Of a stretch of DNA of 64,000 nucleotides, positions 433 to 62,692 are shown one piece after another (within the stretch, counting starts at the first letter, position 1; each line of letters opens with the position of its first letter). The DNA is taken from NCBI GenBank assembly GCA_977017575.1, contig CDRNVI010000140.1:248001-312000 (forward strand), read 5' to 3'. The notes beneath the pieces were generated by a model. The model had not been told where the DNA came from, searched no databases, and worked only from the letters and a program-made list of their open reading frames with translations. Source of the stretch: Paramoeba atlantica. Taxonomy: Eukaryota > Protista > Discosea. Position numbers and translations under genes: made by a program.

Positions 433-716
433 TTGTTGAAAAACCCCAACCTTCCAAAACCAAAAACTATTTCTCCACCAAAAGAAAAACTCAAAAATCA
501 AATTTTCTCTCTTGCTAAAATTTGCGTGTAATTTTTGGCAGTGGAAAATTCATTTCTTGGAACAATTCAGAGAAAAATTAGTTCTAAAAGCAAGAAAAAA
601 GGAGAGAGAGGAGAGAGAGAGAGAAAGGTTCTGTTTATTGTTACTCTCAAAATTTTTCTATCATGTCAATTTAGAGAAAATGTTTGGGGAGAGAGAGAGG
701 AGGAAGAAAAAATGAT

Positions 717-36343: not shown

Positions 36344-38232
36344 ATGTACCTGTTGTGTCTCCTTCTGATGTATTCCTTCGACTGGACTTCTATTGGGGGC
36401 TTGGCTTTTTGTTCGGATTTCCCAACTCGTCCTCATTATCGTACTTCTCCTCCCACAAACGAAACATGTTTTGAATACGAACTCGAAAATGAATGTTCTT
36501 CTCTTTTGAACGATGTCAATGTAAACTCAACAATCCAACACATTTTGTTTGATTCAATCAGTTTGAATGTTTCTGATGTTCGATTGGTTCCATCGGGTTG
36601 TCGAAGACCATTTTTGTGGTTTGTTTGTGGATTGGTGTTTCCTCGTTGTCCTTCTGAAACAATAGAAGAACAACTTTGTCGACAAGTTGAAGGATGTCAT
36701 CAAGTCAACGAAATATGTGAACCATTTGGTCTTTCTTTTGATTGTTCTTTTCCTGCCTTTTTGGATGGGGATGAAGAAGATGAAGAATGTTCAACAAGAA
36801 TTTCAAAAGAAATTGAAGAAGCAACAGAAAATGGAATCAAAGTGGAAACATGTTTGGGAGAACAAAAAGAAACAATTGAATGTTGTCCAGATCCATTTAT
36901 TGTTGATTTTGAAGGAGAATGTGTTGTTGAATGCCCACAATATGCGTATGGGAAACGATATGAAACAAACGCTCAGATTGCTCTGTTTGTGTTGTTATGG
37001 GTTGGAGTTGTGAGTGTATTTATTGGACAGTTTCCTCTTTTTATGATGTCTTTGAATACAAGGTGAGTGTTTTTTATGTTTTTTAAATCTCAATTTTAGT
37101 GAAATCAACTGAAGACAATCAGAAAACTATTCTTTCCATCATTAACAATTGAAAATTAACTTGGTTTCTCTTTGAAAGGTATCCAGCTTATGTTTTGCTG
37201 TTTGCGATCATTGGAAGCCTTGTCTTTGAATTATTTTTTTCATTTGCAATGTTTGCTGGTTTGAATTTTTCTTTCCAACAATCTCATTTTTACAAATTTT
37301 AAATAAAATCCAAATTTTCAGGTGGATTTGAAGAATATTTATGTGGAAATGAAGAAAGTTATCTTGCTGCATTAAATCATTTTGGAAGATCTCGAGTTGC
37401 AGGAGTTCAAATGAGTTTTTGGATGTTGTTTACAAACATAACATTATCATTGTGGGCAGTCCAATCTTTTAATACCTTTTGTTTTATTGCAAGGTACTTT
37501 TTCTTTTCTTTTTTTATCTTTATTTTGAGATTTCTATTGATTTCTTTATTCAGGGTTAAGTGGAAGTTTTTTGAACGATTTGTTGATGGTTCAATTTCCA
37601 AATGGATTCAAATTTGTTTTGTTGTGCCATGTTTTTTCATCCCTTTTGCTCTCTTTCTCTTTTGTGTGATTTACTTTTTCACACACAACTCTTCTTCTGA
37701 CAAACTTATTCTTACTGTCGCATCATTTACTTTTGCTGCATTTCCCTTCAGAAATTCTCCTCTTAATAGTGTATTTCGAGTTTATGGTGCGATTTGCACA
37801 TGTATAGTCGCTCTGTTCGTTGTTTTATCAATCATATTAGTTTTGGGGATTAATTATCGAATTGCTTTCCTTCAATGGAGAGCAATGTTTATCCAATTTT
37901 ACTTCTTAATCGGTTGTGGGATTTATATTTGGTACTATCTGGGGAGTGATCCTGATAGAGTGATACAAAATTATATTAAGTGTGTTGGGTCTCATCCACG
38001 AATTGATCCACCTCCTTGTCAACGAAATCCAAGTGAAGGACGAATTTTGATTTTTTTTACCTATTTGGTAACCTTTTTGTTTCCAGTTCTAGTCAGCTTT
38101 GTTGTTACTTTTACGAATCCTCTTGTGTCTGATTGGTGGAAGGAACTCATTTTCAAACGTAAAATTGTTCGAAGTATGTCTTCCTTGGATACTTTAATGT
38201 CGGACCGATCACCTCGCTCACTTCGTGAATAA
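36344..38232 (+). CDS. Smoothened/Frizzled-like class F receptor, copy 1
   Basis: Signal peptide, 10-Cys CRD, CCPDPF..CVVECP linker, NTR/YPA after TM1, 7 hydrophobic segments, ECL3 YIKC..PPCQ; 4 exons in phase. Confidence 0.85.
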
Positions 38233-38405
38233 AAAAGGTGGGGGGGGGTGAGTGAACATAACTTATTCACACAAACTTGGGAGAATAATTATTTTATTCA
38301 AACAATCTTTCAAAAAGATGTTCTCAAACCCAACAGAGAGAATCAAAGAGGTATTGAATGCCTCACGATTTCCTCCATTACATCAATTATTTTAAATAAA
38401 CAAGC

Positions 38406-40303
38406 TCAACTCTCTATTTTCGCAGAGGATTGCTTCTGTGAATGAACAGAATCTAATTCTGCTGCACTTCGGATTGCCTTGTGCCGAAAAATCAACTCTT
38501 TCCACCACTCAAATACAAGTGGATTCGTCCAAAAAACAACAAAGCTGACTACAACTGGAAACAAAAATATTACCAAAAAGGATAAAAAAAGCAGAATTCG
38601 TCCTTCACTTAGATTTCGGTGGCAAGGAGGTGGATCAATTCGTGGATGAGACCCAACACACTCAATGTAATTGAACAAAGAATCATCGCCATGATCACCG
38701 ATTAGAAGGAACCAGATAAAAAACCCATAAACAATTAAGAAGTAAACTTGGATAAAAAGACCTCTCCATTGAAAGAGAGCGATTCGATAATTGATCTTCA
38801 AGAGGGTTACAATGGAGAGAAGAAAGAAAAGAACGACAACACTAACGCAAATGAAGCTGTAAATTCGAAACACATCACGGAAAGGATTCACCCCAAATGC
38901 TGCAAAAGTAAATGGTGCTGGTGCAAGATAAAGTTTGTCAGAAGAAGAGTTGTGTGTGAAAAAGAATATCACATTAAAGAGGAAAAACGCAAAAGGAATA
39001 AAAAAGCATGGCACAATAAAACAAATTTGAATCCAGGTAGAAACTGGCTCCTCCACAAATTGCCCAAAAAATTTCCACTTTGTTCTGATCACAATTTCGA
39101 AAATAAGAAAGAAGTCAATTCAAAAAAATTAATTATGAGTGAAATGAAAGAAAGTACCTTGCCAACACACAAAATGTATTGAAGGATTGAACAATCCAGA
39201 GTGACACTACAATTTGTATGAATAATGTATAAAAGCTTATTTGAACTCCTGCAACTCGAGATCTTCCAAAACGGGCAAGGGCAGTGAAATAATTTTCTTC
39301 ATTCCCACAGAAATATTCTTCAAATCCACCTGAAAAATGGAAAGGAATTATTCTCAAACTTTTAATTTCACAAAGAGATTGTAAAAATGGGATTGTTGGA
39401 AAGAAAAATACAAACCAGCAAATGTTGCAAAAGAGAGAAATAATTCGCCCATTAGGTTTGTGATGAGAGCAAGCAACAAAACATAAGCTGGATATCTTTC
39501 AAAGAAAATAAAAAAATAAACCAAGGTGATTTCATTAAAATTGATATTATTTAAAAACATAAAAAAAACACTCACCTTGTATTCAAAGACATCATAAAAA
39601 GAGGAAACTGTCCAATAAATACACTCACAACTCCAACCCATAACGATACAAACAAAGTAATCTGAACACTTGTTTCATATCGTTTCCCATACCAATATTG
39701 TGGACATTCAACAACACACTCTCCTTCAAAATCAACAATAAATGGATCTGGACAACATTCAATCGTTTCTTTTTGTTCTCCCAAACATGTTTCCACTTTG
39801 ATTCCATTTTCTGTTGCTTCTTCAATTTCTTTTGAAATTCTTGTTGAACATTCCTCATCTTCTTCTTCCTCAAAAGGTGGAAAAAGACAATCAATTGAAA
39901 GACCAAATGGTTCACATCTTTCATTGACTTGATGACATCCTTCAACTTGTCGACAAAATTGTTCTTCGATTGTTTCAGAAGGACAACGAGGAAATATCAA
40001 TCCACAAACAAACCACAACAATGGTCTTCGACAATCTGATGGAAACATTCGAATATCAGAAACATTCAAACTAATTACATCAAACAAAATATGTTGAATT
40101 GTTGAGTTGACATTGACATCGTTCAAAAGAGAAGAACATTCGTTTTCGAGTTTGTATTCAAAACATGTTTCGTTTGCGTTTGTGGGAGGAGAAGGGGATG
40201 GTGGTGATGGGATTGGAAGGTTTGGTTGTGGTTGTTTCAAAATTGAACAAAAACAAAAGGTTCCAAAGTTGAAAGAACACAACACAATAAACAACAACTG
40301 CAT
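38406..40303 (-). CDS. Smoothened/Frizzled-like receptor, copy 2
   Basis: Same 4-exon structure; MQLLFIVLCS N-terminus; ends ..QKQSSAKIES. Confidence 0.85.
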
Positions 40304-40866
40304 CCCCTTTCTCCAATGAACGCTCGAAAGAACAAACAGCGAGAGAGAACGCCAGAAAACAGGAGAACAACGAGGAAAAGAGGGAAAGTACAACCAGACA
40401 GTCTCTTTTCGGTGTCTGTAAGGCGGACAATGATTTTTCTTTTTGAGTGAGTTGGTTTGGGAGAGAGGAATTGCAGACACTGCCAAGAAAGAGTGACGAA
40501 CAACGAGAGAGAGAGAACGCCAGAGAACGAAGAACAAAAAAGGGTGCTGACGATGAGCGAGTTATCCTTTATTAAGGAGGTTGTCCGGCGAGGAAAGATG
40601 TCCCCTCATTTTAGGGACACCATCCTTTCTTCTTTTTTTTGGGTGGATGGGTTTGGAGAGAGAGGAAAGATTCTTGTTTTGAGTGTCAATTTCAAAAGTA
40701 AAATTGTTCGAAATATGTCAGACTCTCACCTCGCTCACTTCTTGATTCAAAAAGGTGGGGTGATAATTATTTTATTCAAACAATCAACAGACAACAGAGA
40801 GAATCAAAGAGGTATTGAATGCCTCATGATTTCCTCCATTGCATTAGTTATTTTAAATAAACAAGC

Positions 40867-42830
40867 TCAACTCTCTATTTTCGCAGAGGATTGCTTCTGT
40901 GAATGAACAAAATCTAATTCTGATGCACTTCGAATTGCCTTATGTCGAAAAATCAACTCTTTCCACCACCCAAATACAAGTGGATTCGTCCAAAAAACAA
41001 CAATACTGATTACAACTGGAAACAAAAATATTACCAAAAAGGTCAAAAAATACATAATTCGTCCTTCACTTGGATTTCGTTGACAAGGAGGTGGATCAAT
41101 TCGTGGATGAGACCCAACACACTCAATATAATTTGGCAAAGAATCATCGCCTTCAGTGATTAGAAAGAACCAGATAAAAAACCCATAAACAATTAAGTAG
41201 TAAACTTGGATAAAAAGACCTCTCCATTGAAGGAAAGCAATTCGATAGTTGATCTTCAAGAGGATTCCAATGGAAAAAAGAAAGAAAAGAACAATAAGAC
41301 TAAGACAAATGAAGGTGTAAATTCGAAACACATCTTTGAAAGGATTCACCCCAAATGCTGCAAAAGCAAATGGCACTGGTCCGAGATAAAGTTTGTCAGA
41401 AGAAGAGTTGTGAGTGAAAAAGAATATCACATTAAAGAGGAAAAACGCAAAAGGAATAAAAAAGCATGGCACAACAAAACAAATTTGAGTCCAGGTAGAA
41501 ACTGAATCCCCCACAAATTGCCCAAAAAATTTCCACTTTGTTCTGATCACAATTTCAAAAATAAGAAAGAAGTCAATTAAAAAAAATTAATTATGAATAA
41601 AATGAAAGAAAAAGTACCTTGCCAACATACAAAATGTATTGAAGGATTGAACAACCCAGAGTGACACTAAAATGTGGATGAATAATATATAAAAGCTTAG
41701 TTGAATTCCTGCAACTCGAGATCTTCCAAAATGGTCAAGTGCAGTGAAATAATTTTCTTCATTCCCACAGAAATATTCTTCAAATCCACCTGAAAAATGG
41801 AAAAGGATTATTCTCAAACTTTTAATTTCACAAAGAGATTGTTGGAAAGAAAAATACAAACCAGCAAACATTGCAAAAGAGAGAAAAAATTCGGTCATTA
41901 GGTTTGTGATGAGAGCAAGCAACAAAACATAAGCTGGATATCTTTCAAAGAAAATAAAAAATAAACCAAGTTAATTTTCAATTGTTAATGATGAGTGTAG
42001 AGGAGTGTGGAGGAGTGGTGAATAGTTTTAATGGATTGTCTGATTTCAAGTTGATTTGATTTCATTAAAATTGAGATTTAAAAACATAAAAAAAACACTC
42101 ACCTTGTATTCAAAGACATCATAAAAAGAGGAAACTGTCCAATAAATACACTCACAACTCCAACCCATAACAACACAAACAGAGCAATCTGAGCACTTGT
42201 TTCATATCGTTTCCCATACCAATATTGTGGGCATTCAACAACACATTCTCCTTCAAAATCAACAATAAATGGATCTGGACAACATTCAATCGTTTCTTTT
42301 TGTTCTCCCAAACATGTTTCCACTTTGATTCCGTTTTCTGTTGCTTCTTCAATTTCTTTTGAAATTCTTGTTGAACATTCCTCATCTTCTTCTTCCTCAA
42401 AAGGTGGAAAAAGACAATCAATCGAAAGACCAAATGGTTCACATCTTTCGTTGACTTGATGACATCCTTCAACTTGTCGACAAAATTGTTCTTCAATTGT
42501 TTCAGAAGGACAACGAGGAAACATCAATCCACAAACAAACCACAATAATGGTCTTCGACAATCTGATGGAATCATTCGAATATCAGAAACATTCAAACTA
42601 ATTACATCAAACAAAATGTGTTGAATTGTTGAGTTGACATTGACATCGTTCAAAAGAGAAGAACATTCGTTTTCGAGTTCGTATTCAAAACATGTTTCGT
42701 TTGCGTTTGTTGGAGGAGAAGGGGATGGTGGTGATGGGATTGGAAGGTTTGGTTGTGGTTGTTTCAAAATTGAACAAAAACAAAAGGTTCCAAAGTTGAA
42801 AGAACACAACACAATAAACAGCAACTGCAT
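40867..42830 (-). CDS. Smoothened/Frizzled-like receptor, copy 3
   Basis: ORFs 42099..43043 (CRD exon) and 40867..41550 (TM4-7 exon); splice sites conserved. Confidence 0.85.
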
Positions 42831-43462: not shown

Positions 43463-45436
43463 TCAACTCTCTATTTTCGCAGAGGATTGCTTCTGTGAAT
43501 GAACAGAATCTAATTCTGATGCACTTCGAATTGCCTTATGTCGAAAAATCAACTCTTTCCACCACCCAAATACAAGTGGATTCGTCCAAAAAACAACAAT
43601 ACTGATCACAACTGGAAACAAAAATATTACCAAAAAGGATAAAAAATACATAATTCGTCCTTCACTTGGATTTCGTTGACAAGGAGGTGGATCAATTCGT
43701 GGATGAGACCCAACACACTCAATATAATTGAGCAAAGATTGATCGCCATCAGTATTCAGAAAGAACCAGACAAAAAACCCATAAACAATTAAGAAGTAAA
43801 CTTGGATAAAAAGACCTCTCCATTGAAGGAGAGCGATTCGATAATTGATCTTCAAAAGGATTCCAACAGAGAAAAGAAAGAAAAGAACAATAAGACTAAG
43901 ACAAATGAAGCTGTAAATTCGAAACACATCTTTGAAAGGATTCACCCCAAATGCTGCAAAAGCAAATGGCACTGGGACGAGATAAAGTTTGTCAGAAGAA
44001 GAGTTGTGAGTGAAAAAGAATATCACATTAAAGAGGAAAAACGCAAAAGGAATAAAAAAGCATGGCACAACAAAACAAATTTGAATCCATTTAGAAACTG
44101 AATCCCCCACAAATTGCCCAAAAAATTTCCACTTTGTTCTGATCACAATTTCGAAAATAAGAAAGAAGTCAAGCCAAAAAAATTAATTATGAATGAAATT
44201 AAAGAAAAAGTACCTTGCCAACACACAAAATGTATTGAAGGATTGAACAATCCAGAGCGACACTACAATGTGTACGAATAATGTATAAAAACTCATTTGA
44301 ATTCCTGCAACTTGAGATCTTCCAAAATGGTCAAGTGCAGTGAAATAATTTTCTTCATTCCCACAGAAATATTCTTCAAATCCACCTGAAAAATGGAAAA
44401 GAATTATTCTCAAACTTTTAATTTCACAAAGAGATTGTAAAAATGGGATTGTTGGAAAGAAAAATACAAACCAGCAAATGTTGCAAAAGGGAGAAATAAT
44501 TCAGCCATTAGGTTTGCGATGAGAGCAAGCAACAAAACATAAGCTGGATAACTTTCAAAGAAAATAAAAAATAAACCAAGTTAATTTTCAATTGTTAATG
44601 ATGAGTGTGGAGGAGTGTGGAGAAGTGGTGAATAGTTTTAATGGATTGTCTGATTTCAAGTTGATTTCATTAAAATTGATATTATTTAAAAACATAAAAA
44701 ACACTCACCTTGTATTCAAAGACATCATAAAAAGAGGAAACTGTCCAATAAATACACTCACAACTCCAACCCATAACAACACAAACAAAGTAATCTGAGC
44801 ACTTGTTTCATATTGTTCTCCATACGCATATTGTGGACATTCAACAACACACTCTCCTTCAAAATCAACAATAAATGGATCTGGACAACATTCAATTGTT
44901 TCTTTTTGTTCTCCCAAACATGTTTCCACTTTGATTCCGTTTTCTGTTGCTTCTTCAATTTCTTTTGAAATTCTTGTTGAACATTCCTCATCTTCTTCAT
45001 CCTCAAAAGATGGAAAAAGACAACCAATTGAAAGACCAAATGGTTCACATCTTTCGTTGACTTGATGACATCCTTCAACTTGTCGACAAAATTGTTCTTC
45101 TATTGTTTCAGAAGGACAACGAGGAAACACCAATCCACAAACAAACCACAATAATGGTCTTCGACAACCCGATGGAATCATTCGAACATCAGAAACATTC
45201 AAACTGATTGAATCAAACAAAATGTGTTGGATTGTTGAGTTTACACCGACATCGTTCAAAAGAGAAGAACATTCGTTTTCGAGTTTGTATTCAAAACATG
45301 TTTCGTTTGCGTTTGTTGGAGGAGAAGGGGATGGTGGTGATGGGATTGGAAGGTTTGGTTGTGGTTGTTTCAAAATTGAACAAAAACAAAAGGTTCCAAA
45401 GTTGAAAGAACACAACACAATAAACAACAATTGCAT
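43463..45436 (-). CDS. Smoothened/Frizzled-like receptor, copy 4
   Basis: ORFs 44705..45436 and 43463..44146; splice sites conserved. Confidence 0.85.
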
Positions 45437-45495
45437 CCCCTTTCTCCAACGAATGCTTCAAGAAAGAACAAACAGCGAGAGAGAACACCAGAAAA

Positions 45496-46312: not shown

Positions 46313-48285
46313 TCAACTCTCTATTTTCGCGGATTGCTTCTGTGAATGAACAGAATCTAATTCTGATGCACTTCGAATTGCCTTATGTCGAAAAATCAAC
46401 TCTTTCCACCACTCAAATACAAGTGGATTCGTCCAAAAAACAACAATACTGATCACAACTGGAAACAAAAATATGATCAAAAAGGTCAAAAAATACATAA
46501 TTCGTCCTTCACTTGGATTTTGTTGGCAAGGAGGTGGATCAATTCGTGGATGAGACCCAACACACTCAATGTAATTGAGCAAAGATGGGTCCCCTTCATC
46601 ACCAATTAAAAGGAACCAGATAAAAAACCCAAAGGTAATTAAGTAGTAAACTTGGATAAAAAGACCTCTCCATTGAAGGAAAGCGATTCGATGATCAATC
46701 TTCAAGAGGGTTACAATGGAGAAAAAAACAAAAAGAACAACAACACTAACGCAAATGAAGGTGTAAATTCGAAACACATCACTGAAAGGATTCACCCCAA
46801 ATGCTGCAAAAGTAAATGGTGTTGATGCAAGATAAAGTTTGTCAGAAGAAGAGTTGTGTGTGAAAAAGAATATCACATTAAAGAGGAAAAATGCAAAAGG
46901 AATAAAAAAGCATGGCACAACAAAACAAATTTGAGTCCAGGTAGAAACTGAATCCCCCACAAATTGCCCAAAAAATTTCCACTTTGTCCTGATCACAATT
47001 TAAGAAGTCAATTAAAAAAATATTTTCCTGATAAATGAAAGAAAAAGTACCTTGCCAACACACAAAATGTATTGAAGGAATGAACAACCCAGAGTGACAC
47101 TAAAATGTGGATGAATAATGTATAAAAGCTTAGTTGAATTCCTGCAATTCGAGATCTTCCAAAATGGTCAAGTGCAGTGAAATAATTTTCTTCATTCCCA
47201 CAGAAATATTCTTCAAATCCACCTGAAAAATGGAAAGGAATTATTCTCAAACTTTTAATTTCACAAAGAGATTGTAAAAATGGGATTGTTGGAAAGAAAA
47301 TTACAAACCAGCAAATGTTGCAAAAGAGACAAAAAATTCGGTCATTAGGTTTGTGATGAGAGCAAGCAACAAAACATAAGCTGGATAACTTTCAAAGAAA
47401 ATAAAAAATAAACCAAGTTAATTTTCAATTGTTAATGATGAGTGTAGAGGAGTGTGGAGGAGTGTGGAGGAGTGGTGAATAGTTTTAATGGATTGTCTGA
47501 TTTCAAGTTGATTTGATTTCATTAAAATTGATATTATTTAAAAACATAAAAAACACTCACCTTGTATTCAAAGACATCATAAAAAGAGGAAACTGTCCAA
47601 TAAATACACTCACAACTCCAACCCATAACAACACAAACAAAGTAATCTGAGCACTTGTTTCATATCGTTTCCCATACCAATATTGTGGGCATTCAACAAC
47701 ACACTCTCCTTCAAAATCAACAATAAATGGATCTGGACAACATTCAATTGTTTCTTTTTGTTCTCCCAAACATGTTTCCACTTTGATTCCATTTTCTGTT
47801 GCTTCTTCAATTTCTTTTGAAATTCTTGTTGAACATTCTTCATCTTCTTCTTCCTCAAAAGATGGAAAAAGACAATCAATTGAAACATCGAATGGTTCAC
47901 ATCTTTCATTGACTTGGTGACATCCTTCAACTTGTCGACAAAATTGTTCTTCGATTGTTTCAGAAGGACAACGAGGAAATATCAATCCACAAACAAACCA
48001 CAATAATGGTCTTCGACAATCTGATGGAACCAATCGAATATCAGAAACATTCAAACTGATTACATCAAACAAAATGTGTTGAATTGTTGAGTTGACATTG
48101 ACATCGTTCAAAAGAGAAGAACATTCGTTTTCGAGTTTGTATTCAAAACATGTTTCGTTTGCGTTTGTTGGAGGAGAAGGGGATGGTGGTGATGGGATTG
48201 GAAGGTTTGGTTGTGGTTGTTTCAAAATTGAACACAAACAAAAGGTTCCAAAGTTTAAAGAACACAACACAAACAACAATTGCAT
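46313..48285 (-). CDS. Smoothened/Frizzled-like receptor, copy 5
   Basis: ORFs 47557..48480 and 46313..46996. Confidence 0.85.
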
Positions 48286-48879: not shown

Positions 48880-50838
48880 TCAACTCTCTATTTTCGCAGA
48901 GGATTGCTTCTGTGAATGAACAGAATCTAATTCTGATGCACCTTGAATTGCCTTATGTCGAAAAATCAACTCTTTCCACCACTCAAATACAAGTGGATTC
49001 GTCCAAAAAATAACAATACTGATCACAACTGGAAACAAAAATATGATCAAAAAGGATAAAAAATACATAATTCGTCCTTCACTTGGATTTTGTTGGCAAG
49101 GAGGTGGATCAATTTGTGGATGAGACCCAACACACTCAATGTAATTGAGCAAAGATGGGTCCCCTTCATCACCAATTAAAAGGAACCAGATAAAAAACCC
49201 AAAGGTAATTAAGTAGTAAACTTGGATAAAAAGACCTCTCCATTGAAGGAAAGCGATTCGATGATCAATCTTCAAGAGGGTTACAATGGAGAAAAAAACA
49301 AAAAGAACAACAACACTAACGCAAATGAAGGTGTAAATTCGAAACACGTCACTGAAAGGATTTACCCCAAATGCTGTAAAAGTAAATGGTGTTGGTGCAA
49401 GATAAAGTTTGTCAGAAGAAGAGTTGTGTGTGAAAAAGAATATCACATTAAAGAGGAAAAATGCAAAAGGAATAAAAAAGCATGGCACAACAAAACAAAT
49501 TTGAGTCCAGGTAGAAACTGAATCCCCCACAAATTGCCCAAAAAATTTCCACTTTGTTCTGATTACAATTTAAGAAGTCAATTAAAAAAATATTTTCCTG
49601 ATAAATGAAAGAAAAAGTACCTTGCCAACACACAAAATGTATTGAAGGAATGAACAACCCAGAGCGACACTACAATGTGGTTGGATAATGTATAAAAACT
49701 CATTTGAATTCCTGCAACTCGAGATCTTCCAAAATGGTCAAGTGCAGTGAAATAATTTTCTTCATTTCCACAGAAATATTCTTCAAATCCACCTGAAAAA
49801 TGGAAAGGAATTATTCTCAAACTTTTAATTTCACAAAGAGATTGCTGGAAAGAAAAATACAAACCAGCAAACATTGCAAAAGAGAGAAATAATTCAGTGA
49901 TTAGGGTTGTGATGAGAGCAAGCAACAAAACATAAGCTGGATATCTTTCAAAGAAAATAAAAAATAAACCAAGTTAATTTTCAATTGTTAATGATGAGTG
50001 TAGAGGAGTGTGGAGAAGTGGTGAATAGTTTTAATGGATTGTCTGATTTCAAGTTGATTTCATTAAAATTGATATTATTTAAAAACATAAAAAACACTCA
50101 CCTTGTATTCAAAGACATCATAAAAAGAGGAAACTGTCCAATAAATACACTCACAACTCCAACCCATAACAACACAAACAAAGTAATCTGAGCACTTGTT
50201 TCATATCGTTTCCCATACCAATATTGTGGACATTCAACAACACACTCTCCTTCAAAATCAACAATAAATGGATCTGGACAACATTCAATTGTTTCTTTTT
50301 GTTCTCCCAAACATGTTTCCACTTTGATTCCGTTTTCTGTTGCTTCTTCAATTTCTTTTGAAATTCTTGTTGAACATTCCTCATCTTCTTCTTCCTCAAA
50401 AGATGGAAAAAGACAATCAATTGAAAGACCAAATGGTTCACATCTTTCGTTGACTTGATGACATCCTTCAACTTGTCGACAAAATTGTTCTTCTATTGTT
50501 TCAGAAGGACAACGAGGAAACACCAATCCACAAACAAACCACAACAATGGTCTTCGACAATCTGATGGAATCATTCGAACATCAGAAACATTCAAACTAA
50601 TTACATCAAACAAAATGTGTTGGATTGTTGAGTTTACATGAACGCTGTTCAAAAGAGAAGAACATTCGTTTTCGAGTTTGTATTCAAAACATGTTTCGTT
50701 TGCGTTTGTGGGAGGAGAAGGGGATGGTGGTGATGGGGTTGGAAGGTTTGGGATGGGCTTTCTGAGGTTTGTTGTGGTAATAAAGTTGAGGTTGAAGAAG
50801 AGGAGGACAACCAACTCAAACAACAAACGAACAGACAT
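48880..50838 (-). CDS. Smoothened/Frizzled-like receptor, copy 6 (chimeric N-terminus)
   Basis: ORFs 50098..51021 and 48880..49530; MSVRLLFELV signal peptide on a KAI..SAKIES-type TM exon. Confidence 0.85.
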
Positions 50839-51382: not shown

Positions 51383-53356
51383 TCATTGTATCCCTTCCTT
51401 TTCTTTCGAAACAGAATTTGAGGTTCCAGTCTCCAAGTCTGACATATTTCGAACAATTTTACGTTTGAAAATCAATTCTTTCCACCACCCAGACACAAGC
51501 GGATTCGTCCAAGAAACAACAAAGCTGATTGCAACTGGAAACAAAAATAGGATCAAAAAGGTTAAAAAAACCAAAACTCGTCCTTCACTTGGATTTCGTT
51601 GACAAGGAGGTGGATCAATTCGTGGATGAGACCCAACACACTCAATGTAATTTTGTATTACTCTCTCAGATTCACTCCCCAGATAGAACCAGAGCAAAAC
51701 CCCACAAGCAATTAAGAAGTAAAATTGGAGAATCATTGCTCTCCATTGAAGGAAAATAATTCGATAATTAATCCCCAAAAGTAGTATGATTGATAAAACA
51801 ACAAACAGAGCGACTGTACATGTGCAAATCGCTCCATAAACTCGAGGAACGTCATCAATAGGAGAATTCTCGAAGGGAAAAGCTGAAAATATAAATGGTG
51901 ATAAATAAAGAAGAAGTTTGTCAGAAGAAGAGTTGTGTGTGAAAAAGTAAATCACACAAAAGAGAAAGAGAGCAAAAGGGACGAAAAAGCATGGCACAAC
52001 AAAACAAATTTGAATCCATTTAGAAACTGAACCATCTACGAATCGTTCAAAAAACTTCCACTTTACCCTGAATAAAGAAATCAAAAGAAATCTCAAAAGA
52101 AAGAGAGGAACAAATCAAGAGATAAAAAAGAAAAGAAAAAGTACCTTGCAATAAAACAAAATGTATTAAAGGAGAGAACTGCCCACAATGATAATGTTGT
52201 GTTTGAGAGCAACACCCAAAAACTCATTTGAATTCCTGCAACTCGAGATCTCCCAAAACGATTTAATGCAATAAAATAATTTTCTTCATTTCCACATAAA
52301 TATTCTTCAAATCCACCTGAAATTTGGATTTTATTTAAAATTTGTAAAAATGAGATTGTTGGAAAGAAAAATACAAACCAGCAAACATTGCAAATGAAAA
52401 AAATATTTCTTGGAGAAGAACTACAATGAGAGCAAGCAACAAAACATAAGCTGGATATCTTTCAAAGAAAATAAAAAAATAAACCAAGTTAATTTTCAAT
52501 TGTTAATGATGAGTGTAGAGGAGTGTGGAGGAGTGTGGAGAAGTGGTGAATAGTTTTAATGGATTGTCTGATTTCAAGTTGATTTCATTAAAATTGATAT
52601 TATTTAAAAACATAAAAAAAACACTCACCTTGTATTCAAAGACATCATAAAAAGAGGAAACTGTCCAATAAATACACTCACAACTCCAACCCATAACAAT
52701 ACAAACAAAGTAATCTGAACACTTGTTTCATATCGTTTCCCATACCAATATTGTGGACATTCAACAACACATTCTCCTTCAAAATCAACAATAAATGGAT
52801 CTGGACAACATTCAATTGTTTCTTTTTGTTCTCCCAAACACGTTTCCACTTTGATTCCATTTTCTGTTGCTTCTTCAATTTCTTTTGAAATTCTTGTTGA
52901 ACATTCTTCATCTTCTTCATCCTCAAAAGGTGGAAAAAGACAATCAATTGAAAGACCAAATGGTTCACATATTTCGTTAACTTGATAACATCCTTCAACT
53001 TGTCGACAAAATTGTTCTTCTATTGTTTCAGAAGGACAACGAGGAAACACCAATCCACAAACAAACCACAATAATGGTCTTCGACAATCTGATGGAATCA
53101 TTCGAATATCAGAAACATTCAAACTAATTACATCAAACAAAATGTGTTGAATTGTTGAGTTGACATTGACATCGTTCAAAAGAGAAGAACATTCGTTTTC
53201 GAGTTCGTATTCAAAACATGTTTCGTTTGCGTTTGTTGGAGGAGAAGGGGATGGTGGTGATGGGATTGGAAGGTTTGGTTGTGGTTGTTTCAAAATTGAA
53301 CAAAAACAAAAGGTTCCAAAGTTGAAAGAACACAACACAATAAACAGCAACTGCAT
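51383..53356 (-). CDS. Smoothened/Frizzled-like receptor, copy 7
   Basis: ORFs 52625..53584 and 51383..52096; C-terminus SVSKEKEGIQ shared with copy 9. Confidence 0.85.
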
Positions 53357-53873
53357 CCCCTTTCTCCAATGAACGCTCGAAAGAACGAGCAGTGAGAGAG
53401 AACGCCAGAAAACAGGAGAACAACGAGAGAAAGAGGGAAAGCACAACCAGACGGTCTCTTTTCGGTGTCTGAAAAGCGATTTTTCTTTTTTGAGTGAGTT
53501 GGTTTGGGAGAGAGGAATTGGAAACACTGCCAAGAAAGAGGGACCGAACAGCGAGAGAGAGAAATGCCAGAGAACGAAGAACAAAAAAGGGTGCTGACGA
53601 TAAAAAGGGTGACCGTTTGCGGTGGTCGCTTCTTTTGGGTTTTCCGGAAAAAAAGCGCTATTTATTTAGAGGCTAAAAAACCGCCCGGCCATTATTTGAG
53701 TGCCCGAAAAAAAACCTTCACTTTCCTTTTCGTTGTTTCGTTGTGCCACGCCCAACCCTTCTCTCAACTGTTCAACTTTAGCGCAGAGGTACGCCTGAAG
53801 CTTCGAAGAACGACGATCAGTGCTTCACTTTTTGTCTTCTGGTTTTGAGAAGAGGGGATTCACCTTGGTGAGT

Positions 53874-55834
53874 ATGTCTGTTCGTTTGTTGTTTGAGTTG
53901 GTTGTTGTCCTTCTCTTCTTCAACCTCAACTTTATTACCACAACAAACCTCAGAAAACCCATCCCAAACCTTCCAATCCCATCACCACCATCCCCTTCTC
54001 CTCCAACAAACACAAACGAAACATGTTTTGAATACAAACTCGAAAACGAATGTTCTTCTCTTTTGAACGATGTCAATGTCAACTCAACAATCCAACACAT
54101 TTTGTTTGATTCAATTAGTTTGAATGTTTCTGATATTCGAATGATTTCATCAGATTGTCGAAGACCATTATTGTGGTTTGTTTGTGGATTGATGTTTCCT
54201 CGTTGTCCTTCTGAAACAATCGAAGAACAATTTTGTCGACAAGTTGAAGGATGTTATCAAGTCAACGAAAGATGTGAACCATTTGGTCTTTCAATTGATT
54301 GTCTTTTTCCATCTTTTGAGGAAGAAGAAGATGAAGAATGTTCAACAAGAATTTCAAAAGAAATTGAAGAAGCAACAGAAAATGGAATCAAAGTGGAAAC
54401 ATGTTTGGGAGAACAAAAAGAAACAATTGAATGTTGTCCAGATCCATTTATTGTTGATTTTGAAGGAGAATGTGTTGTTGAATGTCCACAATATTGGTAT
54501 GGGAAACGATACGAAACAAGTGTTCAGATTACTTTGTTTGTATTGTTATGGGTTGGAGTTGTGAGTGTATTTATTGGACAGTTTCCTCTTTTTATGATGT
54601 CTTTGAATACAAGGTGAGTGTTTTTTATGTTTTTAAATAATATCAATTTTAATGAAATCAAATGAAATCAGACAATTCATTAAAACTATTCACCACTCCT
54701 CCACACTCCTATCCTCATCATTAACAATTGAAAATTAACTTGGTTTATTTTTTATTTTCTTTGAAAGATATCCAGCTTCTGTTCTGTTACTCACGCTCAC
54801 CGCAACCCTAATGACCGAATTTTTTCTCTCTTTTGTGGTGTTTGCTGGTTTGTAATTTTCTTTCCAACAATCTCATTTTTACAAATTTTAAATAAAATCC
54901 AAATATCAGGTGGAACTGAAGAATATTTATGTGGAAATGAAGAAAGTTATCTTGTTGCATTAAATCGTTTTGGGAGATCTCGAGTTGCAGGAATTCAAAT
55001 GAGTTTTTGGATAATGTTTATAAACATAACATTATCATTGTGGGCAGTCCAATCTTTTAATACCTTTTGTTTTATTGCAAGGTACTTTTTCTTTTCTTTT
55101 TTATCTCTTGATTTGTTCCTCTCTTTCTTTTGAGATTTCTTTTGATTTCTTTATTCAGGGTAAAGTGGAAGTTTTTTGAACGATTCATAGATGGTTCAGT
55201 TTCCAAATGGATTCAAATTTGTTTTGTTGTGCCATGCTTTTTCGTCCCTTTTGCTCTCTTTCTCTTTTGTGTGATTTACTTTTTCACACACAACTCTTCT
55301 TCTGACAAACTTCTTGTTGTGCCTTCGCCCTTTCTGGTGGTACCATTTCCCTTCCGTCGAGATACTTCTCTTGATGACATATTTCGAGTTTATGGGACGA
55401 TTTGCATATGTACAGTCACCCTGTTCATTGTTTTATCAATCATATTAGTTTTTGGGATTAGTTATCAAATTGCTTTCCTTCAATGGAGAGCAATGTTTAT
55501 CCAATTTTACTTCTTAATTACTTGTGGAATTTTTTTCTGGTACTATGTGGGGAGTGATCCTGATAGAGTGATACCAAATTACATTGAGTGTGTTGGGTCT
55601 CATCCACGAATTGATCCACCTCCTTGTCAACGAAATCCAACTGGCGGACGAATTATGAATTTGTTAACCTATTTGGCAACCTTTTTATTTCCAGTTATAA
55701 TCAGCTTTGTTGTTACTTTTACGAATCCTCTTGTGTCTGGGTGGTGGAAAGAACTCATTTTCAAACGTAAAATTGTTCGAAGTATGTCTACCTTGGAGCC
55801 TGGAACCTCAATGAAAGATAAGGGGGAAACATAA
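53874..55834 (+). CDS. Smoothened/Frizzled-like receptor, copy 8
   Basis: ORFs 53820..54617 and 55130..55834; 4 exons in phase. Confidence 0.85.
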
Positions 55835-55885
55835 CTCGTTTACAAATTTATTTTTATGATTAGATAAAAAATTGATAAAAAAACA

Positions 55886-56008
55886 TCAGTGTTCATGGAC
55901 TAATTCAGTCAATCCAACCTGAGGAGTTTGTTCGAAAGGATTTCTTTAGCGGAACTGGAGCAGAAGATGAGATTTTTACTCCAGACAAATCACTCTTTGA
56001 ATCCTCCA
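55886..56008 (-). pseudogene. Captured copy of the last ~40 codons of the Sec7-PH gene
   Basis: Near-identical to 62745-62866 (tcagtgttcatggactaattcagtcaatcc...cactcttt), with a 1-nt insertion. Confidence 0.85.
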
Positions 56009-56281
56009 TTTTAGCTCCACAACAGGCAAATATTGCAAACATAAATTGACAAAAGAAAGAAAACTGTGATTGAATGAAAAGAAAATGGGTCAGAACTGTC
56101 GAAAGTGTTGGACATCAAAATATCAATGTCTCAACCAAAGAGACGGTGCTAATTTTAGGCGACTAAATCGCTAACTTCCTATTTTTGCTTGTTTTGTTGT
56201 GGGAAAAAGAAACTCTTTCTCTTTGCTGCTTCGCTTTGTTTTTGTCCCATTTGTCTCCAGGGCGAGAACCTTTGGCAAGTG

Positions 56282-58256
56282 ATGTCTGTTTGTTTGTTGT
56301 TTGAGTTTGTTGTTGTCCTCCTCTTCTTCAACCTCAACTTTATTACCACAACAAACCTCAGAAAACCCATCCCAAACCTTCCAATCCCATCACCACCATC
56401 CCCTTCTCCTCCCACAAACGCAAACGAAACATGTTTTGAATACAAACTCGAAAACGAATGTTCTTCTCTTTTGGGTGATATCGATATGAACTCAACAACC
56501 CAATACATTTTGTTTGATTCAATCAGTTTGAATGTTTCTGATATTCGATTGGTTCCATCAGATTGTCGAAGACCATTATTGTGGTTTGTTTGTGGATTGG
56601 TGTTTCCTCGTTGTCCTTCTGAAACAATAGAAGAACAACTTTGCCGACAAGTTGAAGGATGTTATCAAGTTAACGAAATATGTGAATCATTTGGTCTTTC
56701 AATTGATTGTCTTTTTCCACCCTTTGAGGAAGAAGAAGATGAAGAATGTTCAACAAGAATTTCAAAAGAAATTGAAGAAGCAACAGAAAATGGAATCAAA
56801 GTGGAAACATGTTTGGGAGAACAAAAAGAAACAATTGAATGTTGTCCAGATCCATTTATTGTTGATTTTGAAGGAGAATGTGTTGTTGAATGTCCACAAT
56901 ATTGGTATGGAGAACGATATGAAACAAGTGTTCAGATCACTTTGTTTGTATTGTTATGGGTTGGAGTTGTGAGTGTGTTTATTGGACAGTTTCCTCTTTT
57001 TATGATGTCTTTGAATACAAGGTGAGTGTTTTTTTATGTTTTTAAATAATATCAATTTTAATGAAATCAACTTGAAATCAGACAATCCATTAAAACTACT
57101 CACCACTTCTCCATACTCCTCCACACTCATCATTAACAATTGAAAATTAACTTGGTTTAATTTTTTATTTTCTTTGAAAGATATCCAGCTTGTGTTTTGG
57201 TCATTAATAGCATTACAATCCTTCTCCAAGAAATATTTTTTTCATTTGCAATGTTTGCTGGTTTGTAATTTTCTTTCCAACAATCTCATTTTTACAAATT
57301 TTAAATAAAATCCAAATATCAGGTGGAACTGAAGAATATTTCTGTGGGAATGAAGAAAATTATCTTGTTGCATTAAATCATTTTGGAAGATCTCGAGTTG
57401 CAGGAATTCAAATGAGTTTTTGGATATTGTTTACAAACATAACATTATCACTGTGGATAGTTCTCTCCTTTAATACATTTTGTTTTATTGCAAGGTACTT
57501 TTTCTTTTCTTTTTTATCTCTTGATTTGTTCCTCTCTTTCTTTTGAGATTTCTTTTGATTTCTTTATTCAGGGTAAAGTGGAAGTTTTTTGAACGATTCG
57601 TAGATGGTTCAGTTTCTAAATGGATTCAAATTTGTTTTGTTGTGCCATGCTTTTTCGTCCCTTTTGCTCTCTTTCTCTTTTGTGTGATTTATTTTTTCAC
57701 ACACAACTCTTCTTCTGACAAACTTCTTCTCTCTCCATCACCATTTCTATTTGCAGCTTTTCCTTTTTATATTCCTCCTCTTGATGACATACTTCGAGTT
57801 TATGGAGCGATTTGCACATGTATAGTCGCTCTGTTCGTTATTTTATCAATCATGTTCGTTTTTGGGATTAATTATCGAATTATTTTCCTTCAATGGAGAG
57901 CAATTTTTATCCAATTTTACTTTTTATTTACTTGTGGGATTTTTCTTTGGTTCTATCTGGGGAGTGAATCTGATAAAGTAATACAAAATTACATTGAGTG
58001 TGTTGGGTCTCATCCACGAATTGATCCACCTCCTTGTCAACGAAATCCAAGTGAAGGACGAATTATGTTTTTGTTAACCTTTTTGATCATATTTTTGTTT
58101 CCAGTTGTAATCAGCATTGTTGTTACTTTTACAAATCCTCTTGTGTCTGGGTGGTGGAAAGAATTGATTTTCAAACGTAAAATTGTTCGAAATATGTCAG
58201 ACTTGGATTCTGGAACCTCAAATTCTGTTTCGAAAGAAAAGGAAGGGATACAATGA
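56282..58256 (+). CDS. Smoothened/Frizzled-like receptor, copy 9
   Basis: ORFs 56189..57025 and 57543..58256. Confidence 0.85.
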
Positions 58257-58591
58257 ACATATTTATTTTTTCAATTTGACCAATCTTTTAGAGAAATCAA
58301 TTTGAACCTGGTTAAATTTTAGCTCCACAACAGGCAAATATTGCAAACATAAATTGACAAAAGAAAGAGAAAACTATGATTGAATGAAAAGAAAATGGGT
58401 CAGAACTGTCGAAAGTGTTGGACATCAAAATATCAATGTCTCAACCAAAGAGACGGTGCTAATTTTAGGCGACTAAATCGTTCACTTCCTATTTTTGCTT
58501 GTTTTGTTGTGGGAAAAAGAAACTCTTTCTCTTTGTTGCTTCGCTTTGTTTTTGTCCCATTTGTCTCCAGGGCGAGAACCTTTGGCAAGTG

Positions 58592-60430
58592 ATGTCTGTT
58601 TGTTTGTTGTTTGAGTTTGTTGTTGTCCTCCTCTTCTTCAACCTCAACTTTATTACCACAACAAACCTCAGAAAACCCATCCCAAACCTTCCAATCCCAT
58701 CACCACCATCCCCTTCTCCTCCAACAAACGCAAACGAAACATGTTTTGAATACAAACTCGAAAACGAATGTTCTTCTCTTTTGAACGATGTCAATGTCAA
58801 CTCAACAATTCAACACATTTTGTTTGATTCAATCAGTTTGAATGTTTCTGATATTCGATTGGTTCCATCGGGTTGTCGAAGACCATTATTGTGGTTTGTT
58901 TGTGGATTGGTGTTTCCTCGTTGTCCTTCTGAAACAATTGAAGAACAATTTTGTCGACAAGTTGAAGGATGTCATCAAGTCAACGAAAGATGTGAACCAT
59001 TCGATGTTTCTTTTGATTGTCTTTTTCCACCTTTTGAAGAAGAAGAAGATGAAGAATGTTCAACAAGAATTTCAAAAGAAATTGAAGAAGCAACAGAAAA
59101 CGGAATCAAAGTGGAAACGTGTTTGGGAGAACAAAAAGAAACAATTGAATGTTGTCCAGATCCATTTATTGTTGATTTTGAAGGAGAGTGTGTTGTTGAA
59201 TGTCCACAATATTGGTATGGGGAACGATATGAAAGAGCGATTCGAATCACTTTGTTTATCTTGCTTTGGATTGGTTTTGTCCTCTTTTTTGTTGGACAAA
59301 TTCCTCTCTTTGCAGTCTCAATTACTCAAAGGTTTGTCATTTGAACTCTTTTTTTAGTTTCATTCTTTAAAAGTTTGTTGGAAAAAAAAAGGTATCCGAA
59401 TTATGTGTTGCCTCTCTCCGTTTTGTCCAATCTCATGCTTGAAGTGTTTTTCTGTTTTTCAGTTTTTGCTGGTAAGTTACTTTTTTTTCTCTTTTTCTGA
59501 TTTCAAATTTAAAGAATGGGATTTTTTTGATTTCTCTTTTCATTTTTCTTTTAGGAGGACCAGAAGAGTATGTTTGTGGAAATGATGAAAATTACTTTTC
59601 TGCTTTGGATTCTTTTGGAAGATCACGAGTGGCTGGAATTCAAATGAGCTTTTTTGTCTTCTTTTTAGCTTTGACGTATTCTTTATGGGTCATCAATTCT
59701 TTCTCAACTTTTTGTTTTATTGCCAAGTTCTTTTCTTTTTTTTTTTAAATTCTGTAATCCAACATCTCATTTTTGAAATGGAAGGGTAAAATATAATCTC
59801 TTTGGGAGATTTGTAACTCATCCAGTTCCCCGCATCTTTGAATACGGCCTTTTGGCAACCTCCTTCATTTTTTCTCTGACAATGTTTCTTTTTTTTGTTA
59901 TTTACTTTTTCACTTCTGAGACACATGTAATTCCGGTTTCGATTGTTTTTGCTGCACTGCCATTGACGAATCCTCTTTTCAATGTTTATCAATCTTTTAT
60001 CACGATTTGTATTGGTTTAATTGCAATATTTTCGTTTGGTACAGACATCCTAATCGCCAAAATTAATTATCGACTTCTTTATTTTCAATGGAGGGGTGTG
60101 TTTGTCCAGTGTTTTCTTGTCGTCCTTGTTGCATTTACTATTTGGATTCTTTTCTTTCAGGAACAAGAGTCAATTATTGAAGAGTATATTTATTGTGTAT
60201 CCTCTCACCCTCAAAGTGATCCACCTCCTTGTGAAAAGTCCTTCCGATCAGATCAAGTGATAACAACCTTGGCTCTATTTCTGGTTTTCCTCTTTCCGGT
60301 GGTTGTGAGTCTGATCGTGTACTTTTCCAAAGTACATGTGATTGCATGGTGGAAGGAACTCATTTTCAATCATCGTGTAGTCCAGGATCTTTCAAGTTTG
60401 GAGTCTCTTCTTTCTGCCACCACCTCGTGA
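58592..60430 (+). CDS. Smoothened/Frizzled-like receptor, copy 10 (divergent 7TM, array-type CRD)
   Basis: ORFs 58499..59344 and 59852..60430; the same four-exon layout splices in phase (R/YPNY.., G/GPEEYVCGND.., K/VKYNLF..). Confidence 0.8.
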
Positions 60431-60838
60431 GAGTGACTGTTGGAGATAGAAGTTGGAAGTTTTGATGATCTGGGAGGGACAAATATCTAAATCTGAACAG
60501 CAAAAGAATTTACATTGAAAAAATTTTGTTTGGGAGAGGACTCTTTGTGAGAGGATCTCTAATGATGATAGGTTATGATGGAACTCTTGTTCAAATTTGT
60601 ATTTGTCAAGTTTGAAAAACTTAAATGGAGAAAGAGAAAATAACTCTTGAATTGTAAAAAGAAATAGCCAAAACTTCCTCGTTTTTGTTTAAAGTCCTGT
60701 TCTCCATCTCGGCTCAATGTTCTCATTTCAGTCATCAAAGAGACTGGAGCTTATTTTAGGTTTCTAAATTCTTTCCTTTCTTTGTTCGTCTTTTGGGAAG
60801 AGGGGGCTCACCTTTCTTGAAGCGTTCATTGGTGAGTT

Positions 60839-62692
60839 ATGTCTGTTCGTTTGTTGTTTGAGTTGGTTGTTGTCTTCTTCTTCTTCAACCTCAACTTTAT
60901 TACCACAACAAACCTCAGAAAACCCACCCCAAACCTTCCAATCCCATCACCACCCCCTTTTCCTCCATGTTTTGAATACGAACTCGAAAACGAATGTTCT
61001 TCTCTTTTGAACGATGTCAATGTAAACTCAACAATTCAACACATTTTGTTTGATGTAATCAGTTTGAATGTTTCTGATATTCGATTGGTTCCATCAGATT
61101 GTCGAAGACCATTCTTGTGGTTTGTTTGTGGATTGGTGTTTCCTCGTTGTCCTTCTGAAACAATAGAAGAACAATTTTGTCGACAAGTTGAAGGATGTCA
61201 TCAAGTCAACGAAAGATGTGAACCATTTGGTCTTTCAATTGATTGTCTTTTTCCATCTTTTGAGGATGAAGAAGATGAGGAATGTTCGACAAGAATTTCA
61301 AAAGAAATTGAAGAAGCAACAGAAAATGGAATCAAAGTGGAAACATGTTTGGGAGAACAAAAAGAAACAATTGAATGTTGTCCAGATCCATTTATTGTTG
61401 ATTTTGAAGGAGAATGTGTTGTTGAATGTCCACAATATTCGTATGGGAAACGATATGAAACAAGTGTTCAGATTACTTTGTTTGTGTTGTTATGGGTTGG
61501 AGTTGTGAGTGTATTTATTGGACAGTTCCCACTTTTTATGATGTCTTTGAATACAAGGTGAGTGTTTTTATGTTTTTAAATATCAATGAAAATCACCTTG
61601 GTTTATTTTTTATTTTTTTTGAAAGATATCCAGCTTCTGTTTTGTTGCTTGCTCTCATCGCAAACCTAATGACCGAATTTTTTCTCTCTTTTGTGGTGTT
61701 TGCTGGTTTGTATTTTTCTTTCCAACAATCTCATTTTTACAAATTTTAAATAAAATCCAAATTTTCAGGTGGAACTGAAGAATATTTATGTGGAAATGAA
61801 GAAAATTATCTTGTTGCATTAAATCATTTTGGAAGATCTCGAGTTGCAGGAATTCAAATGAGTTTTTGGATATTGTTTACAAACATAACATTATCATTGT
61901 GGGCAGTCCAATCTTTTAATACCTTTTGTTTTATTGCAAGGTACTTTTTCTTTTCTTTTTTATCTCTTGATTTGTTCCTCTCTTTCTTTTGAGATTTCTT
62001 TATTCAGGGCAAAGTGGAAGTTTTTTGAACGATTTGTACATGGTTCAGTTTCTAAATGGATTCAAATTTGTTTTGTTGTGCCATGCTTTTTCGTCCCTTT
62101 TGCTCTCTTTCTCTTTTGTGTGATTTATTTTTTCACACACAACTCTTCTTCTGACAAACTTCTTGTTGTGCCTTCGCCCTTTCTGGTGATACCATTTCCC
62201 TTCCATCGAGATACTTCTCTTGATGACATATTTCGAGTTTATGGGACGATTTGCATATGTACAGTCGCTCTGTTCATTGTTTTATCAATCATATTAGTTT
62301 TGGGGATTAATTATCGAATTGCTTTCCTTCAATGGAGAGCAATTTTTGTCCAATTTTACTTCTTAATTGCTTGTGGAATTTTTTTCTGGTACTATCTGGG
62401 GAGTGAACCTGAGAGAGCGATACCAAATTACATTGAGTGTGTTGGGTCTCATCCACGAATTGATCCACCTCCTTGTCAACGAAATCCAAGTGAAGGACGA
62501 GTTTTGGTTTTTTTAACCTATTTGGCAACCTTTTTGTTTCCGGTTGTAATCAGCTTTGTTGTTACTTTTACGAATCCTCTTGTGTCTGGGTGGTGGAAAG
62601 AATTCATTTTCAAACGGAAAATTGTTCGAAATATGTCAGACTTGGAGACTGGAACCTCAAATTCTGCATCGAAAGAAAAGGGGGAAACATAA
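60839..62692 (+). CDS. Smoothened/Frizzled-like receptor, copy 11
   Basis: ORFs 60839..61561 and 61934..62692; shortened Pro-rich stalk. Confidence 0.85.

Follow-up and report, generated by a model that had tools for sequence, protein, structure and literature searches.

What kind of receptor do the members of a tightly packed gene array in the amoeba Paramoeba atlantica encode, and how did the array come to be? To address these questions, we analyzed a 64,000-nucleotide window (positions 248,001 to 312,000 of contig CDRNVI010000140.1, assembly GCA_977017575.1), whose own coordinates are used throughout. Peptides translated from the exons of the first gene served as tblastn queries and identified exactly 11 collinear copies of a four-exon gene between positions 36344 and 62692, with one copy on the forward strand followed by six on the reverse and four on the forward strand (g1 to g11; Table 1). 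The combined evidence makes it likely that these genes encode cell-surface receptors with seven helices and a class F (Frizzled/Smoothened) architecture, that they belong to a very divergent amoebozoan branch, and that the array grew by duplication and gene conversion into a repertoire that would work by the mechanism outlined below.

Gene models and predicted protein

Alignment of the repeated DNA units followed by a codon walk showed all 44 exons of the 11 copies to be open. The introns begin and end with GT..AG in 33 of 33 cases, measure 58-172 nt with a G+C content of 19-28%, and lie at identical phases in all copies, exon 1 ending in phase 2, exon 2 in phase 1 and exon 3 in phase 2. An earlier note, made from the sequence without database searches, had described 11 paralogous four-exon genes in this orientation, free of stops and frameshifts once spliced, and both statements are borne out.

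The encoded protein of approximately 550 amino acids (aa) comprises a signal peptide, a Pro/Ser-rich N-terminal stretch, a Frizzled-type (Fz) cysteine-rich domain (CRD), an acidic spacer, a linker containing five cysteines, seven helices and a helix 8. Among the motifs found in the copies are CCPDPFIVDFEGECVVECPQY, NT(R/S)YPA, Y(L/F/V)CGN(E/D)E and YI(E/K/Y)C..HP..DPPPC. The cysteine motifs that the earlier note had placed in extracellular loops 1 and 3 (ECL1 and ECL3) are present with small variants (YIKC in the ECL3 of g1; a divergent version in g10), while its NTRYPA motif after transmembrane helix 1 (TM1) holds for most copies but reads NTSYPA in g4 and g5, where the codon at the exon 1/2 junction encodes Ser instead of Arg, and ITQRYPN in the divergent g10. 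The Pro-rich stalk it had described corresponds to the Pro/Ser-rich stretch, which extends from the signal peptide to the CRD and not from the CRD to the membrane, and its ten-cysteine CRD is correct for the window type, with just seven or eight of these cysteines conserved in the wider family. In intracellular loop 1 (ICL1), the N-x-R-Y-P-A motif presumably resembles that of Smoothened (SMO), whose motifs we take to be NRYPA and YVLC..DCE..RPS.

Probable class F architecture of the receptors

The fold of the family was approached through its full-length relatives. The protein P0075, 595 aa long and intronless, was matched by window exon 1 at E = 6e-19 and by window exon 4 at E = 5e-12, and aligns end to end with the window-type protein P0076 (E = 2e-40, 26% identity). 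Its gene lies in a tandem intronless subfamily (ENA assembly ERZ24900291, contig ctg3891l; L003:5226-11788) beside genes for proteins of 602 aa and 421 aa (P0036); this second subfamily is approximately 26% identical to the window type, so that intron-bearing and intronless branches of the family coexist in this amoeba. Another relative, P0074, assigned to the family through exon 1, falls in a 90% cluster with UniRef100_A0A7S4NJY3 (P0091) from Paramoeba aestuarina (Amoebozoa, Discosea, Dactylopodida). P0091 is 25% identical end to end to P0076 (E = 4e-34) and carries the UniRef name 'Frizzled/Smoothened transmembrane domain-containing protein', the basis of which was not reproduced by a Pfam scan. 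Among 1.84 billion proteins, an exon-4 profile retrieved just 62 representatives, the majority of them open reading frames (ORFs) of exon size in a small number of ENA, JGI and Logan assemblies. This narrow distribution, together with the named member in an amoebozoan, fits the earlier proposal of an expansion outside Wnt and Hedgehog signaling. Searching the literature for Paramoeba together with Frizzled returned nothing relevant.

A structural model of P0075 was built from an 85-row alignment, with a predicted local distance difference test score (pLDDT) of 78, rising above 90 in the seven-transmembrane (7TM) region, and a predicted template-modeling score of 0.72. Foldseek placed SMO structures at all of ranks 1-15 (best E = 2.5e-6), with ADGRG2 as the best match outside class F (E = 1.6e-4), and VIA-align filled PDB ranks 1-30 entirely with SMO or Frizzled (FZD) structures, at Z 24-25 for SMO (313-416 residues aligned), Z 20-23 for FZD and Z 19.6 for the best other G-protein-coupled receptor (GPCR; approximately 270 aligned). 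The similarity includes the extracellular domains, as residues 26..570 of the model align with SMO 68..553 through the CRD and hinge, and residues 198/214..568 with SMO 190/192..551. A separate model of g1 exon 1 (pLDDT 78.7) was compared by VIA-align with 48,161 chains, and the 11 best were all Fz CRDs at Z 7.3-5.1, from MuSK (7.3) and Ror2 (7.0) through Sizzled, sFRP3 and FZD2/4/7 to the CRD of SMO (5.3), with the next chain at 4.3. This exhaustive search was needed, as Foldseek gave no match to the exon-1 model at E<=0.001 though CRDs headed its list. Consistent with these comparisons, the closest language-model neighbors of the P0075 linker and 7TM region were clusters annotated with the Frizzled/Smoothened 7TM family PF01534, at cosine similarities of 0.94, 0.92 and 0.91, the one at 0.91 mostly from Discosea; 78-100% of the members of neighboring clusters carry PF01534. 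An ESM-Atlas shape search was uninformative, returning generic GPCR folds with Frizzled-4 in row 3.

The family-invariant residues also fit the class F plan (PMC6368630, PMC5442369), consisting of the five linker cysteines, one cysteine in ECL1, a cysteine pair in ECL3 behind an extended helix 6, an arginine in helix 6 and a WW in helix 8. The arginine is present in 11/11 copies (QWR) and 12/12 full-length relatives; in P0075 it is R472, in the first turn of the helix spanning 471-495, and alignment offsets of 17-22 residues, as opposed to a residue-level superposition, would equate it with SMO R451 (6.32). A basic residue at this position at the base of TM6, R/K6.32, is a class-wide switch residue of class F, represented in SMO by R451 (PMC6368630). 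The conserved WW is located by offset near SMO residue 545 in helix 8, beyond which a tail of only about 20-30 residues follows. All window copies lack both cysteines of the TM3-ECL2 pair (g1 exon 3, 37322-37493; start of exon 4, 37554-37800), while nearly all relatives retain them (C329 and C427 in P0075) and the distant relative P0054 alone also lacks both; the joint loss in the window type suggests that the pair forms a disulfide in the relatives.

A number of results pull the other way and have to be set against this assignment. The modeled full-length protein is a relative rather than a window gene, the scores fall from SMO through FZD to other GPCRs as a gradient (Z 25, 22 and 19.6), and SMO is the main class F 7TM structure in the AlphaFold2 training set, which may bias the model toward SMO. 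The Pfam Fz model (PF01392) matched 21 of 29 exon-1-type sequences at E<=0.01, with no other family appearing, but every match fell under the Pfam gathering score of 32.1 bits (26.6 bits for g1 exon 1; maximum 30.3). No PF01534 match was found at E up to 1-10 in the window pieces, for which the scan covered exons 1 and 4, or in the relatives P0036, P0053, P0054, P0059, P0072-P0076, P0079 and P0091. Likewise, HMMER searches of PDB sequences with the exon-4 profile, P0053 and the full-length family profile retrieved no SMO or FZD sequence; the matches were the CRDs of ROR2 and MuSK (E about 1e-3; ROR2 1.4e-3) and, at E = 1, the adhesion receptor ADGRF1. Residue W7.55, found at the bottom of TM7 in every animal class F receptor (PMC6368630), is not conserved here, SMO W535 corresponding to Y552 in P0075 and to T/F/S in the window copies, with F/W one residue on, a placement by alignment offset that is uncertain by about one residue. 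Finally, the motif KTxxxW is absent from all copies, which instead read TNPLVxxWWKE(L/F)IF or, in g10, SKVHVIAWWKELIF.

Some of these observations favor a different origin of the membrane domain, namely from the adhesion/secretin (class B) branch with a Frizzled-type CRD acquired later. The relatives P0072 and P0073 match the secretin/adhesion family PF00002 at its cut-off (20.6-22 bits versus 20.6), over TM1-3 only and with no such match for window-type proteins in the Pfam scan; ADGRF1 is the sole 7TM match of the family profile in PDB sequences; ADGRG2 leads the Foldseek matches outside class F; and Methuselah-like and 7tm_2 clusters occur among the language-model neighbors at 0.90-0.91. 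We nonetheless regard a class B origin as unlikely: class B and adhesion structures reach a maximum Z of about 19 over 242-303 aligned residues, well short of SMO, no GAIN or HRM domain is present, the five-cysteine linker, the ECL1 cysteine and the long, disulfide-bearing ECL3 align with the hinge domain and ECL3 of SMO, the three best language-model neighbors have PF01534, and UniRef names the P. aestuarina relative Frizzled/Smoothened. Still less probable, to the point of being hardly credible, is a cAMP-receptor-like core (Dicty_CAR/Crl, class E) fused to a CRD. The Pfam Dicty_CAR and Frizzled models are known to cross-match in amoebozoan receptors (PMC10445921), and Atlas clusters near P0075 contain PF05462 (Dicty_CAR) in 11-17% of their members, yet none of the scanned sequences matched PF05462, PF01534 prevails in the neighboring clusters, and the extracellular part is built like that of class F receptors.

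The models thus support a class F-like assignment by fold and architecture and not by sequence. Of the tests attached to the earlier claim of Smoothened-like class F receptors, structural comparison came out in its favor, the search with the PF01534 hidden Markov model (HMM) did not, and the Fz CRD search named the right family below its threshold. A preference for Smoothened over Frizzled is not secure; because SMO outranks FZD by just 1-3 Z units and AlphaFold2 training is SMO-heavy, we call the proteins class-F-like, not Smoothened-like.

Assembly, expression and mosaic evolution of the array

An array of close paralogs could also have arisen in assembly or consist of copies that are decaying and not expressed, and in this regard the short-read contigs of three DNA runs (X1-X3) fragment within the array, the RNA-like run X5 contributes just two contigs here, both from paralogs or another strain, and the transcript contigs described below are mosaic and possibly chimeric. 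A second assembly speaks on the other side. Contig ctg3518l of ENA assembly ERZ24900291, which may share reads with the window assembly such that the independence of the two is unproven, is collinear with window positions 26320-47059 (99.0%) and 48601-59882 (99.7%), and carries copies 1-10 in the same order and orientation with the same flanking genes (GH116 glucosylceramidase, GTP cyclohydrolase I and a C2-domain ORF). Even the most similar array units differ by 5-6%, and contigs from X1-X3 cover 30, 30 and 29 of 30 bins in 36300-42299. As far as the analysis can show, the array is not an assembly artefact. The open exons and conserved splice sites, an overall ratio of nonsynonymous to synonymous substitution rates (dN/dS) of about 0.4 and the existence of spliced family transcripts complete the case, and the reading as artefact or pseudogenes was rejected as exceedingly improbable.

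Splicing is documented by two intronless 1.7-kb contigs (L004 and L005) of JGI sample 3300017035, which encode P0076 and P0079 (559 aa each), two proteins that share a 90% cluster with window exon-1 ORFs. Both read across the three predicted joints (SLNT-R-YPAS, VVFA-G-GTEEY and FIA-R-VKWKFF), and their blastn blocks stop exactly where the exons were predicted to end. Compared with the copies in the window, these transcripts are mosaics, as exon 3 of L004 is 100% identical to that of g8 and exon 4 97.8% identical to that of g11, and they derive from a paralog, from a different strain or from chimeric assembly. Further evidence comes from X5, a probable RNA run, in which a 237-nt contig joins exons 1, 2 and 3 at the predicted positions, a joint absent from the DNA runs X1-X3. 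The best matches of this contig (record 25), with 3-4 mismatches, are exon 1 of g1 (36963-37059), exon 2 of g3 (41860-41944) and exon 3 of g1 (37324-37378); the true source is another paralog or strain, and the mapping shows how easily reads cross-map among family members. The transcripts establish that the family is expressed and spliced, without showing this for every individual copy.

The copies share a history only in part. By their exons 3 and 4 the copies sort into three classes, A (g2-g6), B (g1, g7, g8, g9 and g11) and C (g10), for which synonymous divergence (dS) is 0.03-0.26 within a class, 0.5-0.8 between A and B, and >1.5 (exon 4) or >=1.0 (exon 3) between C and the rest. In exon 1, by contrast, the same gene pairs have a dS of 0.07-0.38, and sliding identity is 88-99% in all pairs from approximately 100 nt into the coding region to the start of intron 1, after which it drops to 55-80%. 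Because the high identity extends into intron 1, concerted evolution rather than protein constraint alone accounts for it. The earlier description of a recent, lineage-specific expansion thus holds for exon 1 and for the within-class duplicates, and the lineage specificity fits the host, but a uniformly recent expansion was rejected, as the 7TM classes are old, separated by dS values of 0.6-0.7 and above 1.5.

Individual copies record the exchange. The 5' end of g7 is 100% identical to g3 (A type) and its sequence from the CRD through the 3' flank is g9-like (B type), with the g7 and g9 units in inverted orientation and 93.7% identical over 1.96 kb. Between g10 and g9 the identity is 97-100% in the 5' flank and onward into the TM1 coding region but approximately 55% thereafter, the 7TM of g10 sharing 36% aa identity with that of g1, and g6 combines a B-type signal peptide with an A-type gene. 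Large duplications, direct for g3/g4 and g5/g6 and inverted for g7/g9, gave rise to the array. A second patch of low divergence between classes A and B, with a proportion of synonymous differences of 0.12-0.17 compared with 0.34-0.59 in neighboring exon-4 windows, lies at ECL3 and the top of TM7 (g1 37960-38080 and homologous places), and may be a second conversion tract over the loop that would contact the CRD. Because the CRD of SMO is propped up by ECL3 (PMC5442369), co-homogenization of the CRD and ECL3 is possible, if unproven. Sliding-window dN/dS gave no robust positive selection, with maxima of about 1.2-1.4 within class B on few changes.

These patterns indicate how the array grew and suggest how its products could work. 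Tandem and inverted duplication multiplied the genes, while repeated gene conversion keeps exon 1, encoding the ectodomain and helix 1, near-identical over membrane cores of three old classes. The CRD, seated on the linker and the disulfide-locked ECL3, would bind a ligand, for which a lipid, a sterol-like molecule or a lipid-modified protein is the most plausible candidate, and helix 6 would carry the signal across the membrane. On the cytoplasmic side, the invariant arginine of helix 6 and the WW of helix 8 could form a class-F-like switch. The output would probably run through heterotrimeric G proteins; signaling through Dishevelled is improbable because KTxxxW is absent. Since exon 1 is homogenized while the cores form old classes, the copies probably share a ligand class and diverge in how they couple or in a site within the membrane core. 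Going further, it is conceivable, if rather doubtful, that directed conversion maintains one constant ectodomain (CRD, linker and TM1, possibly with ECL3) while selection maintains the old, divergent 7TM cores, such that one cue or co-receptor leads to several outputs, or that the cores are diversified small-molecule sensors, comparable to the sterol and drug pocket of SMO, with the CRD as a common gate. Such a design would reverse the usual pattern of receptor families, in which the ligand-binding part diversifies.

Two intergenic arrangements and several neighboring genes complete the description of the locus. The genes g7 and g8 lie head to head with 518 bp between their start codons (53356-53874), a spacer that may serve as a shared bidirectional promoter, and g1 and g2 meet tail to tail, their stop codons 173 bp apart. 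Upstream of the array, at about 28800-36200 (L007 gene calls), are a multi-exon GH116 (GBA2-type) glucosylceramidase gene, a GTP cyclohydrolase I gene and the C2-domain ORF (35762-36202, reverse strand). Farther upstream, a nearly intronless importin-alpha gene (23683-25395, forward strand) contains a 570-aa ORF with IBB, Arm repeats and Arm_3, and an 854-aa ORF with RVT_1, zf-RVT and RNase H/RVT_3 (5322-7886, forward strand) belongs to a non-LTR-type retroelement.

Table 1. Receptor genes of the array, with positions in the window.
Gene	Description	Position	Strand	Exons or exon joints
g1	receptor gene, 7TM class B	36344..38232	+	exons 36344-37062, 37179-37258, 37322-37493, 37554-38232
g2	receptor gene, 7TM class A	38406..40303	-	joints 39576/39495, 39416/39329, 39158/39084
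g3	receptor gene, class A	40867..42830	-	
g4	receptor gene, class A, NTSYPA variant	43463..45436	-	
g5	receptor gene, class A, NTSYPA variant	46313..48285	-	
g6	receptor gene, 7TM class A, MSVRLLFE-type signal peptide as in g8-g11 (mosaic)	48880..50838	-	
g7	mosaic receptor gene; inverted duplicate of g9 unit	51383..53356	-	
g8	receptor gene, class B	53874..55834	+	
g9	receptor gene, class B	56282..58256	+	
g10	receptor gene, array-type ectodomain and very divergent 7TM (class C)	58592..60430	+	
g11	receptor gene, class B	60839..62692	+	

Relation to known class F receptors

To our knowledge, almost nothing is established about the role of Frizzled-type receptors in organisms that have neither Wnt nor Hedgehog. 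The array provides a clean natural experiment in this respect, with an ectodomain homogenized into the start of intron 1 over anciently diverged cores, so that the module responsible for ligand choice could be told apart from the one responsible for coupling. Frizzled-type receptors are presumed to be older than the split between opisthokonts and amoebozoans (PMC12716839), and Frizzled/Smoothened-like receptors have undergone independent amplifications in Dictyostelia, Acanthamoeba and Physarum (PMC10445921). The kind of receptor and its amoebozoan expansions are thus already known, and the picture of amoebae with expanded Frizzled/Smoothened-like repertoires is unchanged; what is new is this very divergent branch, unseen by HMM surveys. 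The published Fsl proteins were gathered by the Frizzled 7TM signature IPR000539 and BLASTp (PMC10445921). Surveys relying on PF01534 or IPR000539 overlook entire branches of Amoebozoa that come to light only through structure prediction, and the diversity of class F in protists is therefore under-counted.

The closest known system by lineage is that of the amoebozoan Fsl and Fsc receptors, which come from the same supergroup and share with the window family the layout of CRD and 7TM, lineage-specific amplification and the usual absence of KTxxxW, with no Wnt or Hedgehog context expected. The mostly Discosea PF01534 cluster among the language-model neighbors of P0075 offers an indirect hint of kinship with the Fsl proteins. 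The window family differs from them in having no PF01534 match and in its rarity in the protein collections searched, and whereas dictyostelid Fsl proteins have often lost the CRD, the array keeps and homogenizes it in every copy.

By structure, the best match is animal Smoothened (PDB 4JKV, 4QIN, 5L7D, 5V56 and 6O3C), to which the P0075 model aligns across CRD, hinge/linker, 7TM and helix 8, and with which it has in common a basic residue at the base of helix 6 and a long helix 6 continuing into a structured ECL3 with a cysteine pair. In contrast, identity to SMO is just 13-16% and undetectable by HMMER, W7.55 is not conserved, the family linker has five cysteines, the window type is without the TM3-ECL2 cysteine pair, and the family has neither a long cytoplasmic tail nor a Hedgehog/Patched context. 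With a short tail, a lead of SMO over FZD of no more than 1-3 Z units and an amoebozoan lineage, we do not regard the proteins as Smoothened orthologs. Animal Frizzled 1-10 (PDB 6BD4, 9EPO, 8J9O and others) resemble the family in their fold, in the CRDs of FZD2, FZD4 and FZD7 (Z 5.1-5.7) and in the PF01534 clusters nearest to P0075 by language model, and differ from it in the Dishevelled motif KTxxxW and the PF01534 match that the family lacks, with 9-12% identity in structural alignments. Lastly, the CRDs of MuSK, ROR2, sFRP3 and Sizzled are the top structural matches of the exon-1 model (Z 7.3-5.8), ROR2 and MuSK supplying the sole CRD matches of HMMER among PDB sequences; unlike these proteins, which are kinases or secreted, the array products carry their CRD ahead of a 7TM core.

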